DNA of 64,000 nt. It comes from Phaeosaccion multiseriatum. Its lineage: Eukaryota > Protista > Ochrophyta, other classes. The notes under the pieces are model-generated. The model was not told the DNA's origin, did no database searches, and saw nothing but the letters and a program-made list of their open reading frames with translations. How positions within the stretch are numbered: position 1 is the stretch's first letter; each line of letters starts with the position of its first letter. Of this stretch, positions 998 to 63,916 are shown piece after piece. Both the position numbers and the translations under genes were made by a program. The stretch lies in the NCBI GenBank assembly GCA_965112735.1, contig OZ218951.1:3286001-3350000 (forward strand), read 5' to 3'.

Positions 998-3855
998 CAG
1001 TGACAGGGCATATCTCGACGTAAAGAGGGCTTCGTTTCAGTCAAGGGGGGGGGGGGGGGGCAGTCGAGGCCATCATTCGCAGCGAACCACGCACAGCAAT
1101 GCGGACGCGGGGAATGCCTCTTCAGTCGTCAGCTTACAGGGATGAGCAAGGGGGGTATGATGGTGCCACTCAGAAGGACAACGCAAGGAGTAAATGATGG
1201 AGGAAGCAGGAGCAGCTTGCCCAGCTACGACTCACCAAACGCCATCCGGACCGACCGGAAGGCAGCACGCTTTGCCGGCGCGGGTAATTACCTGAGCGTG
1301 GCCCCATACACAGCGCAGGAGCAGAGAGTGGAAGCAGGAGGGGCAGGTTCACAGAGGAAGAGACAGTCCAAGGGGGGTGCCAAGAAAAGGGGTAGGTGTG
1401 TGCATTGTACTGACTGCAAGCTCATTACGAAGTGGTCCTACGTCCCCATCCTCAGCACGCCAGAGTCACAGTCATCAAAAGAAAGAAGACACGGCTTTGG
1501 CTCCACTACTGTTGTTCCACTAGCTACGATACTGGCTGGGCGGCCCAGCGACTCGCCACCCTCTTCCTCCACTCGTGCACGCACCTTCAGCCATACACAG
1601 GCATAGGCCGCTTCGCATTTGGCGATGGAGTCCCCGTACAGCTCAGCACCCTGAGAGGGGCACAGGCCGGTGGGGAAAGCAGCACGCCTCAGCAAAGGCG
1701 GCGGGGCAGGCCAGAGAAGAGGGTGTGGCGAGCGACGGACTTACCAAACAGGAAGTGGCTTCAGTGCAAGCAGCACTCGACGTGCCCTCGAATTTCACTT
1801 CCTGCGGATGGGGCGATGCAAACGATATAGAGAGAGGACAGGCATGAGTTACATGCTTAGCAAGGTTAGTCAGGCTTCCCAGAGAGCGACTAACGAAGGG
1901 GCTCGTGCAATCACCCTTGTCCTTGTAGGACTCACTTCGCATCCGTGCTCTACGCTGCACGTCACGGGGCAGTTCTGCGCACAGGGGTTCACGTCGCATG
2001 AAGAAGGAGGGGCCGTCGTCGCCGATCCAGAGCAAACAGCAGGCCGGCCAGGATACAGCAGGGAGACCAACCAGGCGTGCGAGCAGAGAGGCGGCGAGAG
2101 AGAGAGGCGTGAGACAGCGAACAGTAGCGATCTCCGCAACAGAACCCCCACGATGAATGGAGAGGACGTACGTCATGGAAGATGGAGACGCAGAAAGCAC
2201 AGAAGGGGACAAGCAAAAAGAGCAGAAGACAGAGACATGCAGGCTGCGACCGTGCCCGCTGTACCCCTCCTGGCTGTAGCTTCCCTCTCCTCCCACCACC
2301 ACATCCTCGCCATCGGCAGCGGGTGCCCCCCCCCCCCCTCCCCCCAAGCCCCCGGTCTCTCGCAGAGCAACTGACTGTAATCCAACAACCACACCAAGCC
2401 TTGGAGTTATCATAGGAGCCTGCCGCAAGGCTTGCTCTTCGAGGTCGGCAACCAAATGGAGGCGGCAGGAGAGTCAAGTGCAGCAGGAGACAGGCCTTCT
2501 GGCTGCGCTCGCTCACCTGGAAGGTCACCCCCTGGCGGTACCAGTCCATAACGGAGAATGGTTTCAGTATTCGTCCGTCCGAACACAGCAGCAGGAGCCG
2601 AGGGGCAGGCAGGAAGCCATATGGTGCCACATGGACGCGAGGAAGACAAAGTTGTGCAGTCCAGCGGGAGACGGCACGGTGAGAGAGGAGGAGCCGCAGC
2701 CGTTGGAACGCGGGAGGCAAGCAGATCAGCCAGCCACAGGCAGAGAGGAGAAGCGAGCCCGGCACGAAGGAAAGGGTCGCGTGACATGCCGAACACGCAA
2801 GGAGGGGCAGCACCACAAGTCAAGGAGGGGAAGGGCGGTAGGGGGGGGGAAGGGTGAGTCTCGCGTCTTGTGATGTACAGTGAGGCTTCGAAGCAAGTAT
2901 AGCCCAAAGAAGATGTAGCTTACACTCCGTCGGGAATAACTACCTCACCAACAAGACGCAGCAGAAACACACAGCAATCCAAGTCACGCATGGTTCTTGA
3001 CTGCGAGCGGCAACAAGGCGACCATGAAGTTGGAGAGACACGCACCCTGCAAGACCTGCCGTCACGCGCGGGGATGTCGGGAGAACCCGAAGGTGTGTCT
3101 GTATCAACATCACACACGATGGGAACGGTCGAGTCCGGCTGGCATTCACAAGTCAAAGGGTCGTCCGTGGCCTGCCCGCCTGACACCACGCCCCCCACAG
3201 CAGTGCAGGCCGTGCTGAAGACTGCTCATCATGCCGAAGGGAGGGAGGAGGGGAGGGACGAGAGCACCAGAGGCATGCATAAATAGAGAGAGGTCAGCAG
3301 CCAGCGACAGTAATAGCTACGAGGAACCACGAGTAAGTGGAGCAGCGGGAGAGCAAAGCAGGCAGGCAGGAAGAGAGAGGAGGCACAGGAGTGGGAGAGA
3401 GAGCACGTTCGGAGTGGGCTCGTCAGAAGGCAGGGCAAGTCACCACAGCCCCCGCAGTGCCCGATGGTTCGGGCCCGGCAGGAGCCTCCTCGTCCCCCTC
3501 TCCCCCTTCCCCTCTGAACTCACATGGCTGGGCATCGAGCGAAGGGGTAATAGTTGTAGCAGCAATATAGTAGTAATAGCAGTAGTAGTAGTAGTAGCAG
3601 TATAGTAGTAGGAGCAGGAGGACGAGGAGGAGTAGAGGAATAGCAGCAGCAGAGGTAGGAGGAGAAGTAGTAGCTAGTAGTAAATAGCAGAGCAGCAGTA
3701 GCACCAGAGGAAGCAGTAGTAGTAGTGGTGATAGTAGAAGTGGTCGGGAAGTCAGAGTAGTAGTATTAGTAGAACTAGTAGTAGTAGTAGTAGTAGTAAT
3801 AGTAATTGTAGTAGCAGCAGCAGTAGTAGTAGTAGTAGTAGTAGTAGTAGTTGTA

Positions 3856-3909
<54 letters not shown>

Positions 3910-13258: not shown

Positions 13259-14295
13259 CAGTAGTAGTAGTAGCAGTAGCAGCAGCAGTAGAGTAGTAGC
13301 AGAGTAGTAGCTAGGGGGGAGGGGGAGCAGGATTAGCAGCAACAGGGGTGAGTGAACTCGTTCCTCTCACGCAGCCCACAGGCCAGCCCAGGCTACATCG
13401 TCGCGCATCCCGGCTGCCAAGACCCTCCCTCCACACACACTCGCTTGAGGATCTTCCTCACTCACCTCTGGAGGAGACGACACGCGAAGTAATTAGCGCG
13501 GGGGGGTGGTTGTGGGGGAGGCGTGTGAGGCGGGCAGACTGCACTCCCAGCAAGCGAGCATGGCCGAGGCAGACAGAGTGAAGCAGCGATTGGCACCAGC
13601 CACCCCCCGCGGGGCGGGGAGAGGAACAAAAGTCGGAATGAAACCCCCTGCCTCGACTCACCGACACATGTGATTCCGTCCCACCTAAACCCGTCGTTAC
13701 AGGTGCAAGTGTAGGAGGCTACCGGGGCCTCCGTAAGTTGCTCGCACTGGGCGTTGACGTCGCAGTTGTTGGGGCTGTCGGTGCAGTGGCCTTCAGCTGG
13801 GGACAGTAGACACGCAAGCAGCAAGCAAGAGAGAGGCAACACACGCACACGCAAGCAACAAGCAAGAGAGAGGGGAAGTGGGGAAGTTGCCATTCGCTGC
13901 TTAAGCTGATGGCTGGGAGGGGAAAGCTCTCAACCAACAACGGAGACGAGACGTGACGTGGACACGTCCAGGCAGGAGCCTTCGAGGAGGAGGAGGAGGA
14001 GGAGGAGGAGGAGGAGGAGGAGGAGGAGGAGGAGGAGGAAGAGGAGAAGGGGAAGAAGCAGGAGAAAAGGAGAAAAAGGTGGGGGGGAGGGGGGGGAGGA
14101 GGTGGTGGTGGTGGTGCACGAGGAGGAGGAGAAGAAGAAGAAGAAGAAGAAGAAGAAGAAGAAGAAGAAGAAGAAGAAGAAGAAGAAGAAGAAGAAGAAG
14201 AAGAAGAAGAAGAAGAAGAAGAAGAAGAAGAAGAAGAAGAAGAAGAAGAAGAAGAAGAAGAAGAAGAAGAAGAAGAAGAAGAAGAAGAAGAAGAA

Positions 14296-14327
<32 letters not shown>

Positions 14328-17300
14328 AGAGGAATACACGTGTTGCTATCGACACTCTCCCTGGCTAGCTACGTCCTACGTCCACCTGCTCCCTCTCGAT
14401 CTTCATCCTCCCTTGCACGGCAGACCAGACATAGCTACGAGCCGCCCAGACAAGAAGAAGGCACACAACCGTGGACGGGCAACACACCCCTCCCTCCAGT
14501 CACGCAAAAGGGCCATGCATCGCTTCGCCTCACAGCCCAGGGTAGGACACACAGCACACTAGTTCACAAAGCAAATCAATCTCTTTCTTCCTTGACTTAC
14601 CAGTGACAGGACATATCTCGATGCCAAGAGGGCTTCGTATCAGTCAAGGGGGGGGGGAGGGGGCAGTCGAGGCCATCATTATTCGCAGCGAACCACGCAC
14701 AGCAATGCGGACGCGGGGAAAGCCTCTTCAGTCGTCAGCTTACAGGGATGAGCAAGGGGGGTATGATGGTGCCACTCAGAAGGACAACACAAGGAGTAAA
14801 TGATGGAGGAAGCAGGAGCAGCTTGCCCAGCTACGACTCACCAAACGCCATCCGGAGCGACCGGAAGGCAGCACGCTTTGTCGGCGCGGGTGGATACCTG
14901 AGTGTGGCCCCATACACAGCGCAGGAGCAGAGAGTGGAAGCAGGAGGGGCAGGTTCACAGAGGAAGAGACAGTCCAAGGGGGGTGCCAAGAACAAACCCC
15001 TTGGTTGTACTGTACTGCAAGCAAGCTCATTACGAAGTGGCCCTACGTCCTCATCCTCAGCACGCCAGAGTCACTGTCATCAAAAGAAAGAAGGCACCGC
15101 TTTGGCTGCACTACTGTTGCTCCACTAGCTACGATACTGGCTGGGCGGCCCAGCGACTCGCCACCCTCTTCCTCCACTCGTGCACGCACCTTCAGCCTTT
15201 TACAGGCATAGGCCGTCTCGCATTTGGCGGTGGAGTCCCCGTACAGCTCAGCACTCTGAGAGGGGCACAGGCCGGTCGGGAAAGCAGCACGCCTCAGCCA
15301 AAGGCGGCGGGGCAGGCCAGAGAAGAGGGTGTGGCGAACGACGGACTTACCACACAGGAATAGCCTCCAGTGCAAGCAGCACTCGACGTGTCATATAGAC
15401 GCGCGTCCTGCCATCCATGCGTGTTTCGAAACAGTTGAATGGGGCGGGGCAACGAAGGGCGGGCGGACAGGCAGACAGGCTCGAGTTTAGTTCAAGGCTG
15501 GCCGGGTAGGCGTTGCACCATACTCCAAACTGCCTTTCCAATCGCCTTCTGGTCAGACTCATGACTGAGAACGAAGGGGCACACGCACGCACGCCTCAGC
15601 CAAAGGCGGCGGGGCAGGCCAGAGAAGAGGGTGTGGCGAACGACGGACTTACCGAACAGGATGCCCCTCCAGTGCAAGCAGCACTCGACGTGCCCTTGAA
15701 TATCGCTTCCTGCGGATGGGGTGATGCAAACGATATAGAGAAAGAACAGGCATGAGCTACACGCTTAGCAAGGTTAGTCAGGCCTCCAGAGAGCGACTAA
15801 CGAAGGGGCTCGTGCAGTCACCCTTGTCCTTGTAGGACTCACAGAGCATCCCTGCCCTACGCTGCACGTCACTGGGCAGTTCTGCGCACAGGGGTTCACG
15901 TCGCATGAAGAAGGAGGGGCCGTCGTCGCCGGTCCAGAGCAAACAGCAGGCCGGCCAGGATACGGCAGGGAGACCAACCAGGCGTGCGAGCAGAGAGGCG
16001 GCGAGAGAGAGGCGTAAGACAGCGAACAGTAGCGATCTCCACAACAGAACCCCCACGCCGCTGTACCGCTCCTGGCTGTAGCTACCCTCTCCTATCACCA
16101 CCACATCCTCTCCATCGGCAGCGGGTGCCCCCCACCCCCCCCTTAACCCCGGTCTCTCGCTAGAGGACCTGACTGTAGCCCAACAACCACACCAAGCCTT
16201 GGAGTTATCAAAGGAGCATGCCGCAAGGCTTGCTCTTCGAGGTCGGCAACCAAATGGAGGCGGCAGGAGAGTCAAGTGCAGCAGGAGACAGGCCTTCTGC
16301 CTGCGCTCGCTCACCTTGAAGGTCACCCCCTGGCGGTACCAGTCCATAACGGAGAATGGTTTCAGTGTTCGTCCGTTCGCACACAGCAGCAGGAGCCGAG
16401 GGGCAGGCAGCCCAGGAAGCCATATGGTGCCATGTGGACGCGAGGAAGACAAAGTTGTGCTGTCCAGCGGGAGACGGCACGGTGAGGGAGGAGGAGCCGC
16501 AGCCGTTGGGACGCGGGAGGCAAGGAGATCAGCCAGCCACAGACAGAGAGGAGAAGCGAGCCCGGCACGAAGGGAAGGGTCGCGTGACATGCCGAACACG
16601 CAAGGAGGGGCAGCGACACAAGTCAAGGAGGGGAAGGGCGGTAGGGGGGGGGTGAGTCTCGTGTCTTGTGACGTACGGTGAGGCTTCGAAGCAAGGATCA
16701 CCCAAATAAACGTTGGGAAGAACCACCGAATCAACAAGCCGCAGCAGAAACACACAGCAATCCAAGTCACACATGGTTCTTGACTGCGAGCGGTAACAAG
16801 GCGACCATGAAGCTGGAGAGACACGCACCTTGCAAGACCTGCCGTCACGCGCGGGGATGTTGGGCGGACCCGAAGGTGGGTACGGATCAACATCACACAC
16901 GATGGGAACGGTCGAGTCCGGCTGGCATTCACAAGTCAAAGGGTCGTCCCTGGCCGGCCCGCCTGACACCTCGCCCCCCACAGCAGCGCAGGCCATGTAA
17001 AAATACACTCCTTTGTCAGTCATGCAACAGGGAGGGGGTAGCGGGTGGGAGAGCACCGGAAGGAGAAAAAAGAGAAGGAGGTCAGAGCGAGCAAGAAGAG
17101 AATTTCGAGAAACGCGAAGAGCAACTTGAGCAGGGGGAGGGGTAAGCAGGCTGGAGGAGGAGAAGGAGAAGAAGAAGAAGAAGAAGAAGAAGAAGAAGAA
17201 GAAGAAGAAGAAGAAGAAGAAGAAGAAGAAGAAGAAGAAGAAGAAGAAGAAGAAGAAGAAGAAGAAGAGCACGAGGAGGAGGAGGAGGAGGAGGAGGAGG

Positions 17301-18558
17301 ACGAGGAGGAGGACGAGGAGGAGGACGAGGGGAGGAGGAGGAAGAGGGGAGGAGGAGGACGAGGAGAAGAAGGAGGAGGAGGAGGAGGAGGAGGAGGAGG
17401 AGGAGGAGGAGGAGGAGGAGGAGGAGGAGGAGGAGGAGGAGGAGGAGGACGAGGAGGAGGAGGAGGACGAGGAGAGGCAGGAAACAAGCGACTGAAGACC
17501 GGGCTCAGGGCGATATTTGTTAGTAGCGGAATCTTCATCTTCATGCTATTAAAAGGATACCGTCATTATCCGGGCTGCTGACGACTTGCCTGTCAGAGCC
17601 AGGGCACAGAAGCAGAGGCAGCGAGGGTGGAGGGCGGAGGGCATCGACATGTTAGACGGAGGCATCGCTCGCATGCACTAGAGGTGAAGCGCTATCTGCA
17701 CTTTGTGTAGGCAGCAGGAAGGGTGGTTCAGTAAAGTGAGGAGAAAAGGGTCCAGCCAGCCAATACGGGTACACTTACTTGCCGGGACCTTGACACAGGC
17801 GAGCAGGCAGAAGAGGAGTGCGCAGTTGTCCCAAGGGCCGTCATCCGCGGAGCCATCCGAGCGAACGCACATGCGGTCGAACAGGGCAGGAGGCGAACAG
17901 CCCGTGTGAGGAGAGAATCAACACCATCACAGCAGCCATCCAGACATGAGAGCAGGCAAGAAGTGGGTGGGAGTGAAAGTAGGAGCAGGCGTCAGGGTCA
18001 AGTGGTGACCGCGAGATATCAAAGCAGAGAGCCCTGTCGCAGCAGGAGGAGGAGGAGGAGGAGAAGGGGGATGGCAGTGGAAGGGAGCGGGAGGAAAGGC
18101 CGGCAGGGGGCTAAGGAGGAGGAGGGCAGGGGCAATAAAGCAGCACAATGATGAATCGCAAGCAACAGGGCGCTGGAGTGGCCCTCACTCAAGCTGCGCA
18201 GCTCCTACCAAAGTGAGAGAGGACTGCCTCAGTGAAAGGAATGGGTGAGAAGGTTCTTCGAGAGCCAATCCGCTCGCACAAACAACGCGGAGGGGAATTG
18301 AGTACTGCGGTGCTCAACACGCAGCAACGCTGATGTCTATTCGCTCGCTTGGGTTGAGGAAGAAGCTTCGTGTCAAGCAGACCTGCTACTAGGCTAACCT
18401 GTTGCGCCTCGGAGCCCAAGAAACTGCTCTCCAACAAAGAGCGCCAACAGCGCCAGCAGCAGCAGCAGCCACCCCCGCCAAGAAGATGACTTGATGGTGT
18501 TCAAGAAGGGGCCGGAGAGGTGGCAGATAGAACGAAGGGAGTGGCACTGGGCGGGCAT
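998..18558 (-). CDS. Large modular secreted/cell-surface Cys-rich protein: signal peptide + [Cys-rich solenoid-like domain + EGF] x >=4, built from micro/mini-exons; 3' end lies beyond the left edge
   Basis: Manually spliced with GT-AG sites. Leftmost unit: 4435-4301 (EGF, phase 1-1), 4102-4101, 3527-3524, 3221-3046, 2531-2517, 2399-2376, 1974-1936, 1801-1745, 1650-1585, 1291-1236, 1029-998 = 606 nt, open frame: AEGHCTDSPNNCDVNAQCEQLTEAPVASYTCTCNDGFRWDGITCAEPFFSTACTAVGGVVSGGQATDDPLTCECQPDSTVPIVCDVDTDTPSGSPDIPARDGRSCR-GVTFQ-AWCGCWIT-NCPVTCSVEHGCE-EVKFEGTSSAACTEATSCL-GAELYGDSIAKCEAAYACVWLK-VITRAGKACCLPVGPDGV-CPLYVEICPVT. Exon length differences between modules are multiples of 3 (176/179/182, 66/63, 56/62) and Cys are invariant. 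The 24-nt exon acceptor and the single-gene linkage are inferred. Confidence 0.72.
3569..3938. repeat. (GTA)n/(GCA)n degenerate microsatellite; equivalents at ~8814-9070 and ~12942-13310
   Basis: Direct inspection. It lies between the candidate 2-nt and 4-nt microexons, and its frame is not conserved between units. Confidence 0.93.
4301..4435 (-). CDS. EGF-like domain exon, copy 3 (135 nt, phase 1-1)
   Basis: Same six-Cys EGF pattern and splice sites. Bases 1-25 match the intron end preceding these exons, implying a fourth copy just off-window. Confidence 0.85.
6111..7073 (-). repeat. 302-bp tandem exon+intron duplication carrying four 57-nt cassette exons
   Basis: Exons 7073-7017, 6771-6715, 6469-6413, 6167-6111, each cag|...|gtaagt and spaced exactly 302 bp apart. 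Confidence 0.92.
9426..9560 (-). CDS. EGF-like domain exon, copy 2 (135 nt, phase 1-1)
   Basis: Same six-Cys EGF pattern and splice sites as 13662-13796. Confidence 0.85.
13662..13796 (-). CDS. EGF-like domain exon, copy 1 (135 nt, phase 1-1)
   Basis: ccccag|CTGAAGGCCACTGC...TGTGTCG|gtgagt; six-Cys EGF pattern CTDSPNNCDVNAQC...YTCTCNDGFRWDGITC. Confidence 0.85.
15351..15709 (-). repeat. 302-bp exon+intron duplication carrying two 57-nt cassette exons
   Basis: Exons 15709-15653 (EAIFKGTSSAACTGGASCS) and 15407-15351 (DARLYDTSSAACTGGYSCV), 302 bp apart. Confidence 0.9.
18399..18558 (-). CDS. Probable first exon (signal peptide/hydrophobic leader) of the modular Cys-rich gene
   Basis: ATG 18558, MPAQCHSLRSICHLSGPFLNTIKSSSWRGWLLLLLALLALFVGEQFLGLRGAT, then ACAG|gttagc donor in phase 1, matching the phase-1 start of exon 17010-16829 (GVYFYMACAAVGG...). 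Confidence 0.55.
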
Positions 18559-19570
18559 GGCCACCAGGCAGAAACAGCAGGGCAAGAAAGAAGGGAGGCA
18601 GAGCGAGGCAGGGATTCAATAAGTCAGTAGGCTAGCCAGGCAGAGAAGAACCTTCAGGAGCTCAAGAAGGCCCGGCCGGAGGAGTGCGAGCGACTAGTGA
18701 GCAATTTCCAGATGTTGCCATGGTTGACGGCTGCCCCCCTCGCTCGACTCGCTCCGCCCCCCCGAAGTCAAGCAATGCTCCTCTCGCCGCGCCCCCCCCC
18801 CCTCCCCAGCAGCCACCGGCCTAGTCACTAGGCACGCACCTCCCACCACCCCCCTCGGTCTCTTTCTGGCTCCGTGCTAATCAACGCACCTGACACATCC
18901 TGCTGGCAGTAATAGGCTGATCCGCGTCTGTTGCTTGACTTGGCCCCCGGCCGCTCTCGGCCGGCCGGTAGCTACGAGCGACGCCGCCGCCGGTACCAGA
19001 TCCAACAACAACGCTGGCGGAGGGGTAGCTAAGGGAGCGAGCAAGCAGTCATGGTGCGAGTATAACGATGGTGAGAGCGTGGCTAGATAGGTCAGGTCAA
19101 CGCCAGAGGGAAATTTGCTTGTAATCCCCTTCAAGAAGGAAGCGGGGCGGAGAGTAGCTACATCACGCAAAAGTTGGAGGAGGGATGACCGACGCAGGCA
19201 GCTCTTTCCTTTCTTTCAGCAGAAAAAAGGGAACTGGGGGGAGGGGGGGGGGGGGCGGGGCTTTTCATGACAGTGCGATCACAGTGCCATCTCCTCTCCC
19301 CCCGATTTTCGATTGCTTGTGCTTTTTGCTTGCTCGCTCACTCACCACAGCTTGTGGGAACAAGAGAGATGTCGGGGTGTATACCCAAATTTCCTAATTG
19401 AGAGATTGTCAAAAATGTTCCCAGGGAAGAAGGGGTGAGAATCCGAAGATGATCGAAGAACGCGTGCCAATTCAGTTTCCGTTTCCGCTCAGTTTCGAAT
19501 TTCATGACATATTCTCGGTTGCTCGTTCACCCACACGGAGCAGAGCTGAAGCACGTAGCAGGTAGCCACC

Positions 19571-22500
19571 ATGGCTACCACTCGAGCTGCTGCAGCTGCA
19601 GCAGCGGCCTCCCTCAGTGTCGGGAGCCGTGTCACCGTTAACGCGAAACCTGGAAAGATCAAGGTGAGAGAAGAGAGGAAGGGGGGGGGGTTTGAAGGAG
19701 GGGTGACTTTTGTTTGGCTTTGTACGCAGTCGTCTCTCCCCGCCGATATAGAGGGGATGGCAGAGCTCCTCTTTGAGTAGCACTCCTGACCTAAGTGCAT
19801 CCTCCTCTGCTCTCAAGGGCATTTATCTCGCCTCCCTGCCTCAACCCCTGTCTCTGCTTGTTTGATTTGTCAATCGATCAGTTCATTGGCACCACCGAGT
19901 TCGCTCAGGGCGAGTGGATTGGGGTTGAGCTTGATCAGCCAGACGGAAAGAATGACGGTTCGGTCCAGGACAAACGGTGAGTGGAAGGAAGGGTCAAAGG
20001 AGGAGGAGACGAGAGTATGAATGCGAATCAGTCTTCGTTCAATTGGCAATCTCTCCAAAGGGGCAAAGGAAGGGGTACGCTACAGAAGCCTTGGCGGGTG
20101 GATCCTAGTGAGTATTGCTGCTGCCCGCATCGCAGCACTGGGTGGGATGCTTCTTTTGTTCTTCGTGCTATTACTATTACCCCCCCGTATCTCCTTCCCT
20201 CTTTCCCCCCTCTCTCCCTCTGTGCCCCGCGCTATTCACTGTGAGCCCTCACTTCGCCTACATTATGGTCGTTCCCCCCCCCTCCCTCCCCGGGCCAGGT
20301 ACTTTGAATGCAAAGAGGCTCATGGGCTCTTTGTCAAGAGGGAGCAGGTGAAGCCCGAGAGGACATCTCGTCTCCCCACCTCACGCATCACGCGAAGCTC
20401 TAGCAGGGCGGCGAACTCCGCGGGCACGGCAGCAGGCACGGCCTCAATCACTTCGTCTGTAGCGGGATCTCCGTCTCCTGTACCATCTCCCCGCTCAACG
20501 GCCTCCTCCTCTTCGTTTGCGACGACGACATCTGCATCGCAACCTTCTTCTACGGCTGCGGATTCGGCGGTGGCCCCCAGTGCTGCTACTGCTACTGCTA
20601 CTGCTACTGCTACTGCTGCTGCTGCTCCTTCCGCGAAAGGCCCCTCCGCCGCGGTGTCTCGCCTTGCCGCCCTCCGAGAAAAGAACAAGGCCCTGAAAGA
20701 CTCGTACACAAGCTCCAGGCGGAACAGTTCAGGAGGCGCCTCTCCCAGTGGCTCTCCCGGTGGGGAAGGGAAAGGGGGCGGAGGAGGAGGAGAAGGAGGA
20801 GGAGGAGGAGGAGGAGGGGAAGGCAGCAGGGAAGGGGAAGGGGAGGTGGGAGGAGCCAATGTCTCTGACGCTGGTGTCGGTACCGCCACTCCTCCTTCCA
20901 AGAGGTCGACTCGCGTGACTGAGGCGTTGTCACCGCCCAGAGGCTCGTCTCCCTCCTCCTCCTCCGGGAAGAAGGTGGCGGCAGGGACAGCGACAGCCGC
21001 CGCGTCTGAAGCCGTCGGGGGTGCTGTAGGCGGCAAGAGACCAGAGAGGCGAGCCGCTACCGCCACCGCCGCCGCCGCGGGGAGTGTCACTGCTTCTGCT
21101 GCGAGTCGTCGGGGTGCTGCTGCTGTTGGCTCGTCTGGAGGAGACTCTCGCACAGCAGCAGCAACAGCAGCAGCAGCTGCTGCTGCTGCCGCCGCCGCCG
21201 CCGAGGAGAGAGAGAAGAAGCTCCAGGAGCAGCTCTCTGCCGCCGAGGAGCAAGTCAAGGACCTGTCTCGCCAACTCAGCACCAAGGCGCAGGCCATGGA
21301 GGAGCTCGCGGTGCAGGCCCAAGAGGCCAACAGCTCCAGAGAGGCGGCGGAGGAACGGATGAGTGCGGCGGAGGCCAGCCTCGCGGAGATGGAGCAAATG
21401 GCCTCCGGGAGCGCCGCTGAGACTCCAGCCAAGGGCAAGGGGGGAGGGGAAGGGGAAGGGGGAGAAGGGGGGCAGCAGGCTCCTGCTACTCCTCAAACGC
21501 CGGCGAAGAGTAGCGCCTCTTCTTCTTCTTCGCCCTCCTCCTCCGCCACTCCGGTGTCCGTTTCGAGGAGTCCGGCAGGTAACGTTGTAGGGCACCATTA
21601 CCACCACCACCACCATCACCACCACCACCACCATCACCTCACCCCACCCCGCCGTCCTCCCTCCTCTTGTCCTCCCATCTCCCCAAGCAGCCGCACCCCC
21701 CGAGATGATGGTGGAGCTCGCAGAACTGCGCATCAAGGCCCGACAAGTCGCTGAGCTGAGCGTCCGTTGCGAGCAGATGGACGCACTGCAGCTGGAGCTT
21801 CAGGACAGTCAAAGGAGCCTTCGGAAGGTGGAGGCAGAGCTCGGGCAGCTGAAAAGTAGGCAGGAGGCGGCAGCGGTGGATGAAAAGACCAAGTTGGGGC
21901 AAATCGCCAAGGAGAAGGCGCACGCAGCGTCGGTGAGTGAGTGAATGTGTGTGTGTGAGTGAGAGTGTGAGTGAGTGGGTGAGTGTGAGTGAGTGGGTGA
22001 GTGTGAGTGAGTGGGTGAGTGAGTGGGTGAGTGAGTGGGTGAGTAAGTCAGGGAGTTTGAAGCGTGTTCTCTCCCCCCCCCCTCCTCAACACGCCCTGTG
22101 ACTTGCACCATCCCATCCTATCCCCCCTGCCTCCCTCACTCACGCACTCCCTCACTCCCTCCCTCCCTCACTCACACACTCCCTCCCTCACCCACTCACT
22201 CACTCACGCACTCACGCACTCACTCACTCCATCCCTCCCTCCTTCCCCTCCCTCTCTCCCTCCCTTCCCCCCTCCCTCCCCACCCCCACCCCCACCCCCA
22301 CGCCCAGGCCGAGAGGAAGACCAAGGAGCTTGAGGAGCAATTGGCGGAGCTCAACGATGCGGTGGAGGCCCTCACACTCGACAAGGAGCAGCTGGTGAGT
22401 GATGAGTCAGGGTTGGCCCTGACATGCCCATGTGCCTGTTGGGCCCGTTTGTCTGCCATCCACTACATCCTCTACACACCCGCTACCGCACATACCCTCC

Positions 22501-23044: not shown

Positions 23045-26000
23045 GCTATTACTACTACTACTACTACTACTACCTACTACTGTCACCACCACCACTACTA
23101 CTACTCCTACTACTACTGCTGCTACTACACTCCTTCTACTCTACTGCTACTCCTACTACTACAACTACTACAACAACAACTACTACTACTACTGCTACTA
23201 CCACTACTACTACTACAACTACTACTACAACTACTACTACTACTACTACTACTACTGCTACTGCTACTACTACTACTACTACTACTATTACTACTGCTGC
23301 TACTACACTCCTTCTACTCTACTGCTACTACTACTACTACTACTGCTACTGCTACTCCTGCTGCTACTACTACTACTCTACTACTACTACCACTACTACT
23401 ACTTTTCTGCTGCTGCTTGTATGGGGGTGGGGAAGGGGGGTTGAAAAGCTCCGTGGGTGTTTTTTTGTTCTACTGCTCGCCACAGTGGACGTAGTCATGT
23501 GTCACGTGGGTTTAGTTTTCAACTCCATCCCCCCCATCTACTGCCATCCATCCACCCATCTGCCCCCCCCCCCCCAACCCCCCGCATCCACTGCCATCTA
23601 TCCATCCATGGACTCCCACCCCACCCCCCCCCCCATCCACTGCCATCCATCCATCCACCTGCCCCCCGCCTTCCCCACAGGCTCTGAAGCGGTTACACGA
23701 CATGTCCACAGCTGATAAAGCCTCCCTCTCGAAGCGAGTGAGGGAGGTGGAGAGGGAGGCGAGTGCTGCTGTGGAGCTGCGCACCGAGCGAGATGCTCTG
23801 GGGAAGTGGAAGGAAGCGGCTTTGATACAGCTCGAAGGCCTCAAAGAACAGGTAGGGAACAGGGGAGGAGAGAGAGGGAGGGAGGGTGAGAGGGGAGGGA
23901 GGGAGCGGAAGGAGGAAGGGAGGGAGGGGCGGGAGGGAGGGGGGAGAAGAGAGAGAGGGGGGAGGGAGGGGAGGGAGGGAGGGAGGAAGGAGGGGAGGGA
24001 GGGAGGGAGGGAGAGGGAGGGCAGGTCAGCGCTTTCAGTTTTCAGTTTACATGGCCTTATCAATATTTGGGTGATCGAAGCTTTCGAAGCTTCTGTGCTT
24101 GTGATCTTTACTAAACTGAAACTATAACTACTACTCCGGTTCTGTTTCTGCCACCACCCTTCCGTTTGCTGCCATCGCCTCCTTCTTTCGTGCAGGTGGA
24201 CGAGGGGGAAGCGTTTCGGGAAATGGTGGAGGAGCTCACAGACAAAAACCTTGAAATGGGAGAGAAGGTCAGTCAATCAGTCAATCAATCAGTCAGTCAC
24301 AGTCAGTCAGTGAGTCCGTGAGTAAGTCGGTTCAGTCAGTCAGCCAGTGAGTCAGTCAGTTTCTTTTCCAGTCGGCTCTCCCTTCTCTTCTCTTGGACCC
24401 ACCTCCCTCCCTCCCTCCCTTTCTCCCTCCGTCCTCACTTCCTGCTTGATCTAGGTGGACGAGTTACAGACTTCTGTAACGGAACTTGAGTCCTCTCTAG
24501 AACTGTCAGAGGAGCTGGAACAGACGCAGGGGGAGGAGCTCAGGACGATGAACAGGGAGATGGATAGTAAGGACATGGAGATTAGGAGGCATGCATTGGA
24601 GAAGGAGCAGTTGCAGAGGAAGGTGGAGGACGGACAGCGCACAGTGGAGAGGTTCCGACATGTCGCAGAGCTGCTCAAGAAGGAGAGAGACGCCTTGGCA
24701 GAACAGGTGAGTGAGGATGGGGGTGAATATGAAAATGGCATTAAGGGCATGGAAGGAGGGAGGGTGTGAGGGTATAAGGGCATGAGCGAGGGAGGGGAGA
24801 GGAGCAAGTAACCACCAAGAATTAGTCACAAGAGGGTGGTGGTGAGGGGCGCAACAAGCGCAAGTGAATCCCTACCCGGGCGATGATGGGGTGAATGACC
24901 GGAGACTGGTCTAATCGGGGGTGATGAGCCATTTCTCTGTCTCTTGACGAAACGTCGCGATTCAGCGAGACGTCGTTCGTTCGGGGGCAGGGCGGTGGTA
25001 GAAGCCTACCTATACGATAGTAAATGCCGATGCCGATGGTACTGGATGTTGCGGTAAGGTGGTACTTTTATAGATCGACTCAGACCGCCTGCCTCCCACG
25101 GCCCTCCCACACCTTTCTATAATGTCTCCCTCGTTGCCTTACACACCAATCCACCTCATTTAGGTCTCACTCGGAGGAGAGGAGCTCGAGTCCATCCGGA
25201 AGCGCCACCAAACGGCTCTGTCGCGCAAGCAGCGGGGCTCTGTTGGTAGTGTGGCTGGTGGGGCCACAGGCGGTGTCGGCAGTCGGTCCATGCTCTCCTG
25301 CCAGCTGCAGACAATCAAGACGCTAGAGAACGCCGTGCGAGCAGAGCGGCTTGGCTTGCTCCTGCCGGTGGCGGTGAAGGAGACGGAGGAGAGAGCCCTT
25401 GCCGCTGACCTCGTCCTCTGTCGGGCGGCTGCCAAGGCGGGGGTGATGCTGGAGATGCTGCTGCCGCAGATCCACTCCTTTGTCGTCAGCAGCCATGGCA
25501 AGGGACAACAGAAGAGCAGGGAAGGAGGAGAGGGCTCGTCGTCGGAGGATCCATTGGGGGAGGAGCAACAGGATGGCGAGGAGGAGGAGGAGGAGGAGGG
25601 GAGAGAGGAGGCCGTCCGGCGAAGCAGGCTGGAGGCAAAGGTATGCACTATGCTGGTGGATTTGCAGGGTAGGGCGAGGAAGCTTATTGCACTGACTGTC
25701 GGAGAGAAGGAGGATGTGGGGTCGTCTGCACCCTCCTCGGACTCTGCAGATGGTAGCCGCCACAGTCAAGGAGGCGGACTGTATCACCAACTGCTGTCGC
25801 CCGAGAAGGTGGAAGAGATCTCCTTGGAGCTTTCCTCTGGCTTCCAGGCAGCGGAGGGCAGTATGGACGCCATGCTTAGTGTGCTGGAGGACGAGGGGGG
25901 CTGCTTGCCACCTGCGAGGGCCGGCGAAGCAGTGGCAGGACTGGAGGCGGCCTTGTCGGCACTGGTAGAGAGGCAAGCGATCTTCTTGGAGGGATCCGAG

Positions 26001-28238
26001 GAGGCCGAGGCAGAGAGTGAGGAGCACGAGGGAGACAGAGTCACAGGAGGAGGAGCAGAGTCTGGAGCCCTACTGCTGCAAGGGCAAGGCAACTCTTTGA
26101 CGGACGCCTCTTGCTTGTTGGACGGCGTGCGGGCGAATGCGCTCGCTGCGGCCGTAGCTGGCTTGGTGGTGGGACGAGAGGAGGGTAGCGAGGAGGAGGA
26201 GAAGGAGGGGCAGGGGGAGGGGGGCATGAAGGCCCTCCTACGAGACGTGGACAGGCTCCAGCGTCGCTTGTGGGGCGGCGAGAGCAGCAGCGGTAGCAGT
26301 GTTGATCTAACTGCAGGTGTAACGGCAGGTGTAACGGCAGGTGCAACGGCAGGTGCAACGGGAGGCATGCCTGAGATGCGCACGGCGGCCACCCTACGCG
26401 CCGCTCGAGAAGTCTGCGAGAGACTCCGGGAGGTGCGAGAGGGGCTCCATGGCTGGCTTGGCGACTCACAGGCACAGAGCGAGGGGGGAGGGGGGGGAGG
26501 ACAAGTAGGAGTCAAGGAGGATGGTGGAGGCAACCCTCTGTCACCCACCACCATTGGAGGGCTTCGGTCGATACTCCAGAGCCTGTACGTGGCGAGTCCT
26601 GTCGGGCTGCTGGGCACAGGGTGTGATGCGGTGCTGCCCAGCAACTTGTGGCACATCATGCAGACCGGCGCTCTGCCCTCTTCCGTTGTGGGGAGAGGAG
26701 GAGCAGGAGGAGGAGGGGGCGGAGGCCTGGGTGGGAGGACGGGCAAAGGCAGCAGGATCAGCATGGGGGACATCTTCGGCGGCGAGGAGGAGGAGGATGA
26801 TGAGGAGGAGGAGGGAGGAGACTCGGCGGCTGCTGCTGCGCGCAAGGAGGCCAAGGGCGCGAGTACACCTTCTTTTGTGCCTCTCTTTCTCGCACGAGCT
26901 GAGAAGAGCCAGGAGAGGCTACAGGCGGGGGCCTCTCTTGAGCCGCAGCTGCAAGCAACGCTTGTGCAGAAGGCGGACTTGGCAAAGACCTTGTCCCAAA
27001 GAGAGAAGGAACTCTCCTCTGCCAAGGCCTCTGCAGAGCGGCTGGAGGGCCTGGTGGAGCAGTACCGGGGCAGTGGCAAGGAGGCAGAGGAGGCGAGAGG
27101 GCGGTTACAGAGCGTAACCGAAGAGGCGCGAATATATAAGGAAGCCATGGAGGCGGAGGAGGAGAAGGTGAAGATGTACGAGAAGCGGGTGCGCGATCTT
27201 CTCAGCAGCAGCACCAGCAGCGGCAGCGGCGGGGGCGGGGGAGGCGCTTCAAGCCCCATGGGTGGCGGCTCTCCGTCGTCTCGACTCCTCCGGAAGAAGA
27301 GCGTGTCCCTCGGTGTAGGGGAGTCTCCCCGCTTCACCCTCTCGGCAGCAGATGCCGCCGACCAAGGGGCTTCTGCTGCTGGTGGGGCGTTATCCGGCGT
27401 TGAGGCGGGCGGGGAAAGCACCGGCCTCCTCAGGCGCATGTCCAGCTCGTCCTCTTCCTTTGCAAGCACTGCTGGCACTGCTTCTGGAACTACTGTATTA
27501 CCAACTGCTACTGTTGGAGCGTCTCCTGCCGAGGCTCGTGCGATGATGCAGGCGTTGGTGCACTCGAGAGGGGAGTGTGCGAGGTGGAGGGCCGCAGCCA
27601 CACGGACCATGTTGGGTAGACTGCAGCCCCTTGCCGTGGCCAGAGACAGCCATCCGTTCACATACGGGAGCGCAGGTGGCCGAGAGCAACAGCAGCACAA
27701 GGAGGAGAAGCAGGGGAAGCAGGGGAAGCAGGAGGAGGGAGAGGAGGAGGAGGGGGAGGAGACGAGAGGCCCAGCAGAGAGCACGGCCGAGTGGTCGTCG
27801 TCAGCTGTTGAGACCGGAGGAGGAAGTGCAGCGCCTGTAGCGGTAGCGGCTTGCCTGCAGGAGCTCCAGAGACTGTCGCAGAGGATTCACGCCGAGCGAG
27901 CAAGACCCAAGGTTGTTAATTTGTGTGCAGGGCGAGAGACCAGCGCCAGAATGGCGGGCATGAGGGCGAGGCTGAGGAGGAGGAGGAGGGAGGAAGACGG
28001 AGGCGGAGGCGGGGAGGGAAGTGGAGGAGCAGCAAAGACAGACGTCTCTACTGTTTCCGCTGACTCTGCTGACTCTGTTGACGGCTCTGTTGCTGGGGCT
28101 GCTGGGCTCGGCGGCAAGGGCGGCGTCGTGAGTGGGGCGAGGGAGGAGTGGCGGGCGCAGCAAGTGCAGGCCCTGAGGCTCATGCGGGATTTCGATGCCG
28201 TTCGGCACAGGGCCTCGGCAGCGATGCGGTATCAATGA
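19571..28238 (+). CDS. DCTN1: Dynactin subunit 1 (p150-glued), multi-exon
   Basis: Spliced N-terminal CAP-Gly domain VGSRVTV...GKIK|[32 protein letters not shown]|[12 protein letters not shown] with the GKNDG motif. It is followed by a basic Ser-rich linker and coiled-coil exons with p150-type words ([42 protein letters not shown]). The final ~3 kb exon stops at 28238. Confidence 0.9.
22968..23403. repeat. (CTA)n microsatellite in a dynactin intron
   Basis: Direct inspection; inside intron 22825-23680. Confidence 0.95.
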
Positions 28239-44301: not shown

Positions 44302-52999
<8,698 letters not shown>

Positions 53000-61111: not shown

Positions 61112-63309
61112 TCAGTCAGTGAGACCGAGAGCATTGGTTAAGAAGGCGGCCTCAACCGCCGCCTCGTCGAGGCGCTCGTCCTCGAGCTGCGGCCCTTCAT
61201 GCCCGTGGGGATGCAGGTACAACAGCACGTCTCGAGGGCCCGTGTTGTGCTCACGCACCTTGGACACCCTGTAGCGGCAAGGAGGGGAGAGGAGGGCAGA
61301 GGAGGGGAGGGGGGAGGAGAGGAGAGGAGAGGAGGGGAGAGGAGAGGAGAGGAGAGGAGAGGAGAGGAGAGGAGAGGAGAGGAGGGGAGAGCAGAGAGGA
61401 GGAGAGGAGAGGAGGGGAGAGGAAGGGAGAGGAGAGGAGAAAAGAGGAGGAGGGGAGGGGAGGGGAGGGGAGGGGAGGGGAGGGGACGGGAGGGGAGGGG
61501 AGAGGAGAGGTGGCGTGCGTGAGTGTGTGGGTGGGTAGGGAGGGGGGAGGGGCACACCAGCAGGAGCAGGCTGGCGAAGACATGTGTATGTATCATCTCC
61601 CTCTCTTCCGCTCCATCGCCTCCCTGTCTCCCTCCCTCTCTGTGCGGCCCTCTCTGCTGCTCCTCCTCCTGCTGCTGCTGTATCACCAACTGCTGCTGCC
61701 CTGTCCCTCCGTTCCATCTCACCCTCTCTGTGGTCCCCCCTCCCTCCTCCTGCGACGCTCTCTCCCTCCCTTCTCCTGTTTCCCTCCCCCCCTCCCTCTC
61801 GCCCTCCATCCCTCCCTCCATCCCTCCCTCCCTCCCACCTACCCACCCACCCACCCACCACTTGGCTGCCTCCCAGTAGTTGACGGTGCGGTCCTCCAGT
61901 GACGAAGTGACCAAGAGGGCTGGGTAGGGCTGCAGACGTACGTTGTGGCAGGGAGAGTAGCCACGCAGGTACGCAGACACCTCGGGGGAGGAGGACGGGT
62001 CACCCCACTCTGACATTGCCACGCAAACACAGCACAGCCACACACACGCATGGGAGGGACAAGATCGATCGCCAGAAAATGTGAAGTGGAGGGAGAGAGA
62101 GAGAGGGGGGGGGGGGGGGGGGGGGGGAGTGCGCGCAGGTGAGACTTGCCGAGCTGCCTTCGGCCCAACAGAAAAGGCATATCATTGATCTCATCCCCCA
62201 TCCTCCCTTCCTCCCTCCCTCCAGCCCTCCCTCCCTCCCTCCCTCAATCCCTCCCTCCCTGTCCCTCTCTCTCTTCCTCCCTCCCTCGCTCCCTCCCACC
62301 AGCCGCCGGCTGGCTCAGCAGCCACTCAGTCGCTCACCATCATACTCGTGCACAGTGAGCGGCAGAGAGGGATCGAGCATCGTTGTAGCCACGTCCACAA
62401 AGGGCGCCTGCACGGTCGAGCGATGGTTGGGTGGTTGTTGTGTGCGTTTGTGGGTCGGCGGTGTGTGTGTGTGTGCGTGCGTGAGACTCTCAGCAGATCC
62501 CTTCACTGTCAGTCCCCGAGTCTGTCCCTGACGAGTGCTGATTGATGTTAATGCTGTCAGTGAGCGGGAGCTGCCCTACTGACTCATCCCTCCACCCTCC
62601 CTCCCTTCCTTCCTCCCCTCCCTCCCTCCCTTCCTCCCCTCCCTCCCTCTATTACCTCCCTCCCTCCCTCCCTTCTTTCCTCCAAGTACCTTCATGACCA
62701 TCGCAGCGAAGAGAGAGTCTCCATGCAAGTTGGCGAGAGCCCCCGCCACGATCCCTCCTGCGGTGCCATGACAAGTTCATGGACACACACATGCACACGC
62801 ACATGCACACGCACACACACGCACGCGCGCACACACACAGAGATACACACACAGAGATACACACACACGCAAGTAGGGAGAGGGAGAGGGAGAGTGAGAG
62901 AGATGATATGGTGTCCTCTCGCCCCTTTCTGTTGCTTTGCGTCTCTTTTGCATCTCTTGCAGTGTGCTGCTCTGTCTCCCCTCTCCCTCCCTCCCTCCCT
63001 CCCTGCCTGCCTGACAAGGAGCTGAAACGCAACACAAACCTCACACACTTCTTGATACAGCCTCTCTGTGGCCTTTCCCCCTAGCCCCTTACCCATATAC
63101 CACCTGATGATATATATCCTTGACATACCTGCGCTGTGGGTATGCAGGGCCATGAGTGGGGGTGAGGAGTACCCCTTTTCCTTGAGGGCCAAGGCGCACG
63201 CCTCAGCGTCGAGCACTGAGACCCGCTTGGACAGCCCGGTGGCCGCTTGGTGCCAGCCTCGCCCGAGCTCTCCGCCGCCCCGGACGTGTGCAAAGGCAAT
63301 CACCCTGTG

Positions 63310-63346
<37 letters not shown>

Positions 63347-63916
63347 AGGAGCGAGTGAGTGAGTCTATCATGTGTGTGTGTGTGATCTAGGAGCGAGTGA
63401 GTGAGTCTATCGTGTGTGTGTGTGTGTTCTAGGAGCGAGTGAGTGAGTCTATCCGTCGGGCCGCCCTCGGCTGCACAAATCACTCACTCCACAGCAGCAG
63501 TTGGCGATGCAGCAGTCACAGCAGTGTGTGTGTGCAAGACGCGGCGGCTACGTCTCTGTCTGTCCCCCCCCCCCCCCCCTCTCTCTCTCTGTCATCACAG
63601 CTGTCTTTCGTGTCCGCCCACCCACTCCTCCCCTCCCCTACCCCGCCACTTCCCTGCTCCTCCTCTCTCCCCCACCCCCCTCCCCCCTTTCCCCTTCCCC
63701 TTCCTCCTTTCTCCTTCCCCCGCCCCCCCCCACTCACCAGCCGTTCTCCATGAGTGCCCTGTGAAACGCACTATACCCAATCGAAAGGGGGATGCCGTAG
63801 GCCCCATAGCAGCACATGAGTAAGGGGTTCTCGCCGTCCAGTGCCATCCCCTGAGAGTGGCACACAGTCACGGGAATGGCTGTGCCGTCACTGGACTCGG
63901 CCGATATGCGGTGCAA
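61112..63916 (-). CDS. Oligopeptidase B-like prolyl oligopeptidase family (S9A) peptidase, 3' part; 5' end beyond the right edge
   Basis: SSDGTAIPV, YGAYG, AHVRGGGELGRGWH, HSA|GG (nucleophile Ser), APFVDV..TMLDPSLPLT..EYDE|WGDP, YSPCHNV..QPYPALL, EDRTVNYWEAAKW (Asp), GH (His); stop 61112. Confidence 0.92.

Follow-up and report, generated by a model that had tools for sequence, protein, structure and literature searches.

We analysed a 64,000-nucleotide (nt) stretch of the genome of the ochrophyte Phaeosaccion multiseriatum (assembly GCA_965112735.1, contig OZ218951.1, positions 3,286,001 to 3,350,000 of the forward strand), referred to below as the window, with coordinates counted from its first letter. 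Its composition is eukaryotic, with 54-64% G+C and a high density of microsatellites. Four tandem units of 4.2-5.0 kb (U1 to U4) make up an array at 726-18558, which we read as a candidate minus-strand gene, and U4 is adjoined by 1.4 kb of unique sequence containing an ATG at 18558. The observations made at the level of the sequence, namely the array, an open frame running through it and an EGF domain within that frame, are confirmed and lie far beyond chance. With moderate confidence we read the locus as a hidden, many-exon gene on the minus strand that would encode a secreted, disulfide-rich modular protein, in which a leader starting at ATG 18558 is followed by chained modules.

Tandem units and the minus-strand frame

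An initial annotation of this DNA had proposed that the array holds no long meaningful open reading frame (ORF), and that small minus-strand exons with GT-AG borders splice into one open frame. Our reading agrees on the first point: the ORFs of at least 80 amino acids (aa) read in 1-20000 are either low-complexity translations of microsatellites or the coding frame running on into introns, and six plus-strand ORFs matched no Pfam family. The second point was borne out when the exon chain was rebuilt independently from a minus-strand alignment of the four units. This gave 36-40 segments, all with an AG acceptor and a GT donor (mostly of the GTRAGT or GTGCGT type), which join into a single frame. 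Ending each module with the two micro-exons originally proposed (31 and 16 nt) gives a frame of 2632 nt, or 877 codons, and a single 32-nt tail exon gives 2572 nt, or 857 codons; neither version contains a stop and both contain 92 cysteines (Cys). In the 32-nt version the modules are 168, 193, 251 and 192 aa long, with 18, 22, 28 and 22 Cys, respectively. An Rfam scan of the window returned no match, and tblastn with the gene model over 18.6-64 kb found no additional copy of the gene. The features of the array, with the predicted exons in order of transcription, are as follows.

726-5109: tandem unit U1
5110-10110: tandem unit U2
10111-14328: tandem unit U3
14329 to ~17160: tandem unit U4
18399-18558, minus strand: leader exon; opens with the ATG at 18558 and spans 53 codons and 1 further base; residues 31-43 form a hydrophobic core; phase 1 at its end
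16829-17010, minus strand: U4 E2, exon of the orphan Cys domain, entered in phase 1 and left in phase 0; this first module has no EGF exon
16315-16329, minus strand: U4 E3, 15-nt micro-exon (GVTFK), placed on its splice motifs and an x-V-x-F-x motif as at the E5a start; the frame holds without it
15843-15881, minus strand: U4 E4, 39 nt, 3 Cys
15653-15709, minus strand: U4 E5a, 57 nt, one repeat
15351-15407, minus strand: U4 E5b, 57-nt cassette exon in the second copy of a 302-bp unit
15190-15255, minus strand: U4 E6, 66 nt, one repeat
14842-14897, minus strand: U4 E7, 56 nt, phase 0 to 2
14601-14632, minus strand: U4 E8', 32-nt module-end exon, ends in phase 1; 14744-14774 plus 14601-14616 in the initial annotation
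13797-14600, minus strand: U4-U3 inter-module spacer, read as an intron; its purine-rich microsatellites (13984-14334) are pyrimidine-rich on the coding strand
9561-10386, 4436-5381 and 1-997, minus strand: equivalent spacers
13662-13796, minus strand: U3 E1, EGF exon, phase 1-1, EGF_3 match
12438-12616, minus strand: U3 E2, from unit alignment and frame
11908-11922, minus strand: U3 E3, 15-nt micro-exon
11332-11370, minus strand: U3 E4, from unit alignment and frame
11140-11196, minus strand: U3 E5, from unit alignment and frame
10979-11044, minus strand: U3 E6, from unit alignment and frame
10628-10683, minus strand: U3 E7, from unit alignment and frame
10387-10418, minus strand: U3 E8'; alternative 10530-10560 plus 10387-10402
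9426-9560, minus strand: U2 E1, EGF exon
8311-8489, minus strand: U2 E2, from unit alignment and frame
7781-7795, minus strand: U2 E3, from unit alignment and frame
7207-7245, minus strand: U2 E4, from unit alignment and frame
6111-7073, minus strand: four U2 E5 copies, 57-nt cassettes at 7017-7073, 6715-6771, 6413-6469 and 6111-6167 in a tandem array of 302-bp exon-plus-intron units
5954-6016, minus strand: U2 E6, 63 nt, 3 nt below the other units
5619-5680, minus strand: U2 E7, 62 nt, 6 nt above the other units
5382-5413, minus strand: U2 E8'; alternative 5521-5551 plus 5382-5397
4301-4435, minus strand: U1 E1, EGF exon
3046-3221, minus strand: U1 E2, 176 nt
2517-2531, minus strand: U1 E3, from unit alignment and frame
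1936-1974, minus strand: U1 E4, from unit alignment and frame
1745-1801, minus strand: U1 E5, from unit alignment and frame
1585-1650, minus strand: U1 E6, from unit alignment and frame
1236-1291, minus strand: U1 E7, from unit alignment and frame
998-1029, minus strand: U1 E8'; alternative 1138-1168 plus 998-1013; frame still open, in phase 1
1-120, minus strand: start of a fifth unit, of the spacer type that precedes the EGF exon elsewhere
12480-12560, 8350-8430, 3090-3165 and 16870-16950, minus strand: middle patch of E2, which resembles a swapped cassette and not accumulated point changes

The predicted exons measure 135 nt (E1), 176-182 nt (E2), 15 nt (E3), 39 nt (E4), 57 nt (E5), 63-66 nt (E6) and 56-62 nt (E7), followed by the tail of 32 nt or 31 + 16 nt. 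E1 is missing from U4, and E5 is present once in U1, once in U3, twice in U4 and four times in U2. An earlier estimate was about 11 exons per unit; for the ordinary units 8 suffice, and U2 has 11. Phase 1 is found at the end of the leader, of the EGF exon and of the module tail, and both E1 and E2 begin in phase 1, so that the leader-E2, E1-E2 and tail-E1 joins are all in frame and the modules can chain behind one leader, as had been suggested. The 2-nt and 4-nt micro-exons formerly placed between the EGF exon and E2 are unneeded: E1 leaves off in phase 1 and the E2 acceptors at 12616, 8489 and 3221 pick up in phase 1, so that joining the two directly keeps the frame.

With strong donors alone allowed, just three to five routes between E7 and the following EGF exon preserve the frame, and all of them use the same few strong donors. 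Although the 31 + 16 nt tail keeps the frame open, the single 32-nt exon appears to fit slightly better, because a long C-rich tract precedes it, all variable sites of the region fall in its first half and the 31-nt exon does not vary; between unit pairs the 32-nt exon differs by 12.5%, against 0-2% in the preceding intron. In favour of E3, its five codons (G-V-T-F-Q/K) reproduce the x-V-x-F-x motif with which the E5a repeat exons begin, and a strong donor follows it; joined to E4, it completes a repeat of 18 residues. The leader ATG is the first past an in-frame stop 19 codons upstream, stands in the context GCCATG and is followed by a 13-residue hydrophobic core.

At the left edge of the window, positions 1-120 align (120/128) with the spacer that leads into the EGF exon of U3, which means that a fifth unit begins here and is cut by the window. 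The candidate gene continues leftward beyond the window, and its 3' end and the C-terminus of its product lie outside.

EGF domains, Cys repeats and variation confined to exons

E1 encodes a true EGF domain, as the initial annotation had recognised: Pfam EGF_3 (PF12947) is matched over positions 1-36 of its 36 with 45.0 bits, above the curated cut-off of 28.5 (E 1.3e-11), and the six Cys follow the pattern C-x6-C-x5-C-x12-C-x-C-x10-C identically in U1-U3. EGF modules on phase 1-1 exons are a classic form of mobile module, and the predicted E1 exon, a single one of 135 nt, is likewise in phase 1 at both ends. Compared with EGF modules elsewhere, there is only one EGF domain per module here, on the least variable exon (2% variable columns). 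E2 encodes an orphan Cys domain of 58-60 aa with 5 Cys. It is followed by four to seven repeats per full module, each of 18-22 aa with a C-x5-C spacing and mostly carried one to an exon on symmetric exons of 39-66 nt, in keeping with the earlier description of Cys-rich repeats. When 12 repeats of 19-22 aa are aligned, the two Cys never vary, nor do one Ser and one Ala. A 57-nt exon corresponds to one 19-aa repeat, and the 302-bp exon-plus-intron unit that carries it occurs in 1, 1, 2 and 4 copies across the units; in U2 the period is 302, with 3.3 copies and 94% matches.

That the non-EGF parts belong to no recognisable family, as first proposed, held in searches of Pfam and of 1.84 billion representative proteins. 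Queries for domain, homology and structure searches were single exons, and the non-EGF pieces submitted to Pfam, namely E2, E6 and the leader, matched no family. A profile built from the four copies of E2 found no homologue among the representative proteins. Its three hits, two bacterial Ig-like proteins of the Big_12 type and one unrelated repeat protein, were rejected since only short repeated motifs were matched. Some 21 residues at the start of E2 (12550-12616), reading T-A-V-G-G-x-V-S-G ... N-P-L-T, resemble a strand of the Big_12 (PF19078) repeats and account for the top hits among the representative proteins; homology was set aside, as a profile comparison gave 22% probability over 21 columns, with only positions 3-24 and 5-23 of the E2 profile involved and no Cys in the bacterial repeats, and the likeness is probably a chance or convergent motif. 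In the PDB, E2 gave nothing beyond TAL effectors (best E 0.04) and the 19-aa repeat profile gave no chain at E up to 10. The top score for E2 in the ESM Atlas, 0.59, offered no lead, a metagenome scan returned one locus that matched the search pattern itself only, and a word search with the EGF exon found no protein of 79-250 aa sharing even three 5-residue words. AlphaFold modelled E2 alone with a mean predicted local distance difference test score (pLDDT) of 44.6, and this model was not used for a fold search.

Differences between the units are concentrated in the exons. Pairwise difference is 12.7% in exons against 4.3% in introns, and high and low divergence alternate exon by exon: E2 differs by 3-23%, E4 by 8-23%, E5 by 5-18%, E6 by 10-21% and E7 by 4-18%, and every intron between them by 0-8%. 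Variable columns make up 20-30% of E2, E4, E5, E6 and E7 and usually number 0-4 per 40 flanking intron bases; they cease at the predicted exon borders, an exception being the upstream side of E2, at which U4 diverges. Length differences between copies of an exon are all multiples of 3 (176/179/182, 63/66 and 56/62), as against about 20% of the gap runs in introns. The Cys are unchanged in all units, in agreement with the invariance claimed for them, and the changes fall at two or three residues in the C-x5-C loop and at the residue after the second Cys. The closest pair of units changes from exon to exon, and the middle of E2 comes in two sharply distinct patch types, shared by U1 and U4 and by U2 and U3, between nearly identical flanks. 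Together these two features suggest that segments have been exchanged, over and above any point mutation. Either selection shields the differences between modules from the homogenisation seen in the introns, or the patches are imported from paralogues with unrelated introns.

With microsatellites masked, the pyrimidine fraction on the coding strand is 0.60 in introns, 0.62 in inter-module spacers and 0.66 in the leader intron, compared with 0.52 in exons and 0.53 in the 5' flank. An excess of T over A is likewise found in introns, spacers and leader intron and is absent from exons and 5' flank. This contrast fits one transcription unit ending at the leader. As a separate observation, a strong plus-strand asymmetry (A over T and G over C) spans the whole array at 1-18400 and ends at the leader exon, as judged against 18600-64000. 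The array microsatellites that were read (4614-5089, 9746-10116, 13089-13310, 13984-14334 and 17161-17474) are pyrimidine-rich on the coding strand.

A probable chained gene and its alternatives

We think that the array is probably a real, unannotated modular gene under diversifying evolution, and regard its function as an inference. In the model that we favour, one minus-strand gene would extend from the leader exon leftward out of the window, and the hydrophobic leader would send the product into the secretory pathway. That product would consist of at least four or five serial, disulfide-rich modules, each full module comprising an EGF domain on a phase 1-1 exon, the E2 domain of 58-60 aa and then four to seven C-x5-C repeats. 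A two-exon tail would bring the frame back to phase 1 and so deliver the next module in frame. Unequal crossing-over between near-identical introns could alter the number of both modules and repeats. The introns would be kept alike (about 4% difference) and the exon patches (10-23%), which lie mostly in the inter-Cys loop and directly behind the second Cys, would be kept different or replaced. The variable loops might then act as ligand-contact surfaces, with the EGF domains as constant spacers. Binding or recognition is the function we would tentatively put forward, at well below even probability and only narrowly ahead of a structural role in a matrix. The interpretation offered in the initial annotation is supported in part, and its receptor or adhesin would be a candidate role of this kind. 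A further extension, which we regard as quite improbable, is a germline diversity system. Recombination would use the near-identical introns as scaffolds and shuttle hypervariable exon cassettes among modules and paralogous loci, phase-symmetric exon skipping could add combinatorial variety, and the outcome would be an individual-specific secreted or surface repertoire for, for example, mating, self/non-self discrimination or recognition of viruses and parasites.

Several observations weigh against the gene as drawn. E3 and the tail exons (E7b/E8 or E8') were placed solely by splice motifs and frame logic, and they vary no more than their flanks or only slightly more. Synonymous divergence in exons is 0.09-0.17, above the intron divergence, so that selection at the protein level alone does not explain the pattern. 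With no homologue of E2, there is no comparative support from other species. Four sequencing runs containing the locus, which derive from a single sample, were placed over 10117-13983 (leaving out the repeat at 12933-13303); because introns and exons are covered alike, contigs cross the exon borders and no joints are seen, these runs behave as DNA and have no bearing on splicing. Finally, in U1-U3 and at the left edge an in-frame ATG with 31 hydrophobic codons (MATSPLPL...) precedes E1 (13797-13893, 9561-9657 and 4436-4532 on the minus strand) and could be a separate start with its own signal peptide.

This last feature is the basis of an alternative that we consider unlikely, in which every unit is a small gene in its own right and the array a tandem family of such genes. 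Each gene would start at its own ATG (13893, 9657 or 4532), use the 31 hydrophobic codons as its signal peptide and terminate at a stop after an unused E7 donor (TGG TGA), leaving the leader at 18558 to serve U4 only. A stop codon does stand immediately past the E7 donor, the exons needed for chaining show little variation of their own, and the best 13-aa Kyte-Doolittle window of the hydrophobic stretch reaches 2.71, compared with 3.12 for the leader. The same stretch, however, is a C/T-rich tract ending in CCCCAG, as expected of a polypyrimidine tract with its acceptor, and such an A-poor tract will contain few stop codons in any frame. The context of the ATGs is poor, with T at -3 in two of the three units. 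E7 ends in a consensus donor (G|GTGAGT), the segments with good splice sites that follow it restore precisely the phase in which E1 starts, and a 4-nt indel in U3 breaks read-through past the E8 donor. Once masked, the spacers are skewed like introns and unlike the true 5' flank, and a terminator, promoter and 5' untranslated region could hardly fit into the gap of only ~190 nt between microsatellite and E1. The leader intron itself, searched with GTRAG donors and up to two extra exons, yielded no in-frame exon.

The gene model could also be right and the protein be a structural component of a cell covering or matrix, which is possible though on the unlikely side in our estimation. Relaxed constraint on the loops, together with gene conversion importing patches from paralogues whose introns are unrelated, would then account for the exon variation in place of selection for diverse binding surfaces. 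The overall ratio of nonsynonymous to synonymous divergence (dN/dS), at 1.1-1.35, is near 1 and not far above it, as this account would have it; the excess divergence of exon synonymous sites over introns agrees with it too, and the two E2 patch types and shifting closest units resemble replacement of segments. Relaxed constraint alone, on the other hand, cannot raise exons above introns that are homogenised in the same array, since the differences must be protected or imported, and the frame, all 92 Cys and the rule of indels in multiples of three are strictly preserved. We rate as very improbable the idea of a relic, silent or in decay, left by recent amplification of part of a former gene whose expression has ceased. 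Exons that have diverged by about 13% and acquired several indels, with no stop or frameshift in 857 codons, speak of continued constraint. In favour of a relic, no run behaving as RNA proved to contain E2, and no protein in public collections contains it; the blank RNA search is weak, as many runs lay outside it.

Known systems and neighbouring sequence

Of the systems with which the candidate gene can be compared, schistosome micro-exon genes (MEGs) are an analogy proposed at the outset. Published accounts describe MEG exons of 3-81 bp (10.1101/2023.06.21.545858) and secreted products encoded by a leader followed by short symmetric exons between long introns, with fast evolution (10.1101/2023.06.21.545858; PMC4350168). 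The array gene is predicted to share the secreted product, the leader with short symmetric exons, the long introns and the rapid change. It differs in that Pfam searches with E2, E6 and the leader and the E2 profile search showed no sequence relationship, the lineage is another one and the small exons encode regular disulfide repeats in tandem modules. As to exon size and symmetry, E3-E6 are symmetric and small (15-66 nt), E1 (135 nt) and E2 (176-182 nt) are not micro-exons, and E7 and E8' have to be taken together to be symmetric. In MEGs it is alternative splicing of the micro-exons that generates protein variants.

Brown-algal ROCO-LRR and NB-ARC-TPR genes carry one repeat per exon, change repeat number by shuffling or duplication and, under diversifying selection, have been proposed to encode recognition molecules (PMC3341825; PMC11378527). 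One repeat per exon and repeat number changed by exon duplication are found here as well, and diversifying selection on the repeats is a probable further parallel. The brown-algal proteins, however, couple their LRR or TPR repeats to signalling domains (ROC-COR or NB-ARC); here there are disulfide repeats, a predicted secretory leader and EGF domains, with no signalling domain in view, and the exon pieces tested gave no Pfam match to LRR, TPR, ROC-COR or NB-ARC. In snake venom toxin genes, accelerated exon evolution and segment switching operate between paralogous animal genes; here the comparable pattern holds between internal modules of what we take to be a single algal gene, in which the Cys framework recurs many times. 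The short regular repeats with a fixed Cys pair recall disulfide-braced beta-solenoid proteins of the beetle antifreeze type, although the repeat profile has no sequence similarity to any solved member in the PDB. A lead, and no more, is provided by the EGF-rich mastigoneme/SIG1 proteins of chromist algae (SIG1 and Ocm1, with tenascin-like EGF domains), mentioned in another report (PMC5756292). Judged on its predicted exons, the array gene belongs to none of the MEGs, the ROCO-LRR/NB-ARC-TPR genes or the venom genes, and only its EGF exon falls in a known family.

If the gene is real, it would illustrate how genes built of exons of 15-66 nt can escape annotation, and how variation can be confined to splice-bounded patches on a near-constant intron framework within a single gene. 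It would also contribute, in E2, a domain without a relative among 1.84 billion representative proteins, and a candidate algal secreted protein seemingly shaped for diverse binding. To our knowledge, extracellular recognition molecules are poorly known in this algal group. The symmetric cassettes and modules would serve as natural variants and provide a simple experimental handle. Were the product a structural matrix protein only, the locus would be a useful example for gene finders and otherwise ordinary.

Elsewhere in the window, two long plus-strand ORFs at 20021-21754 and 25251-28238 (577 and 995 aa) are low-complexity and coiled-coil-like, without a Pfam match; the start of the first lies 1.46 kb from the leader ATG, which is on the other strand, an arrangement suggestive of a divergent promoter region in common. 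A multi-exon ankyrin-repeat gene lies on the plus strand at 46400-52300, with Pfam Ank matches of 2e-19 and 4.6e-16 on two ORF pieces, and is interrupted by long tetra- and pentanucleotide microsatellites. At 62692-63480 on the minus strand an ORF piece matches prolyl oligopeptidase (Peptidase_S9, 6.5e-08), and at 45538-46149 there is a perfect (CTGT)153 microsatellite of 612 bases with 100% matches.

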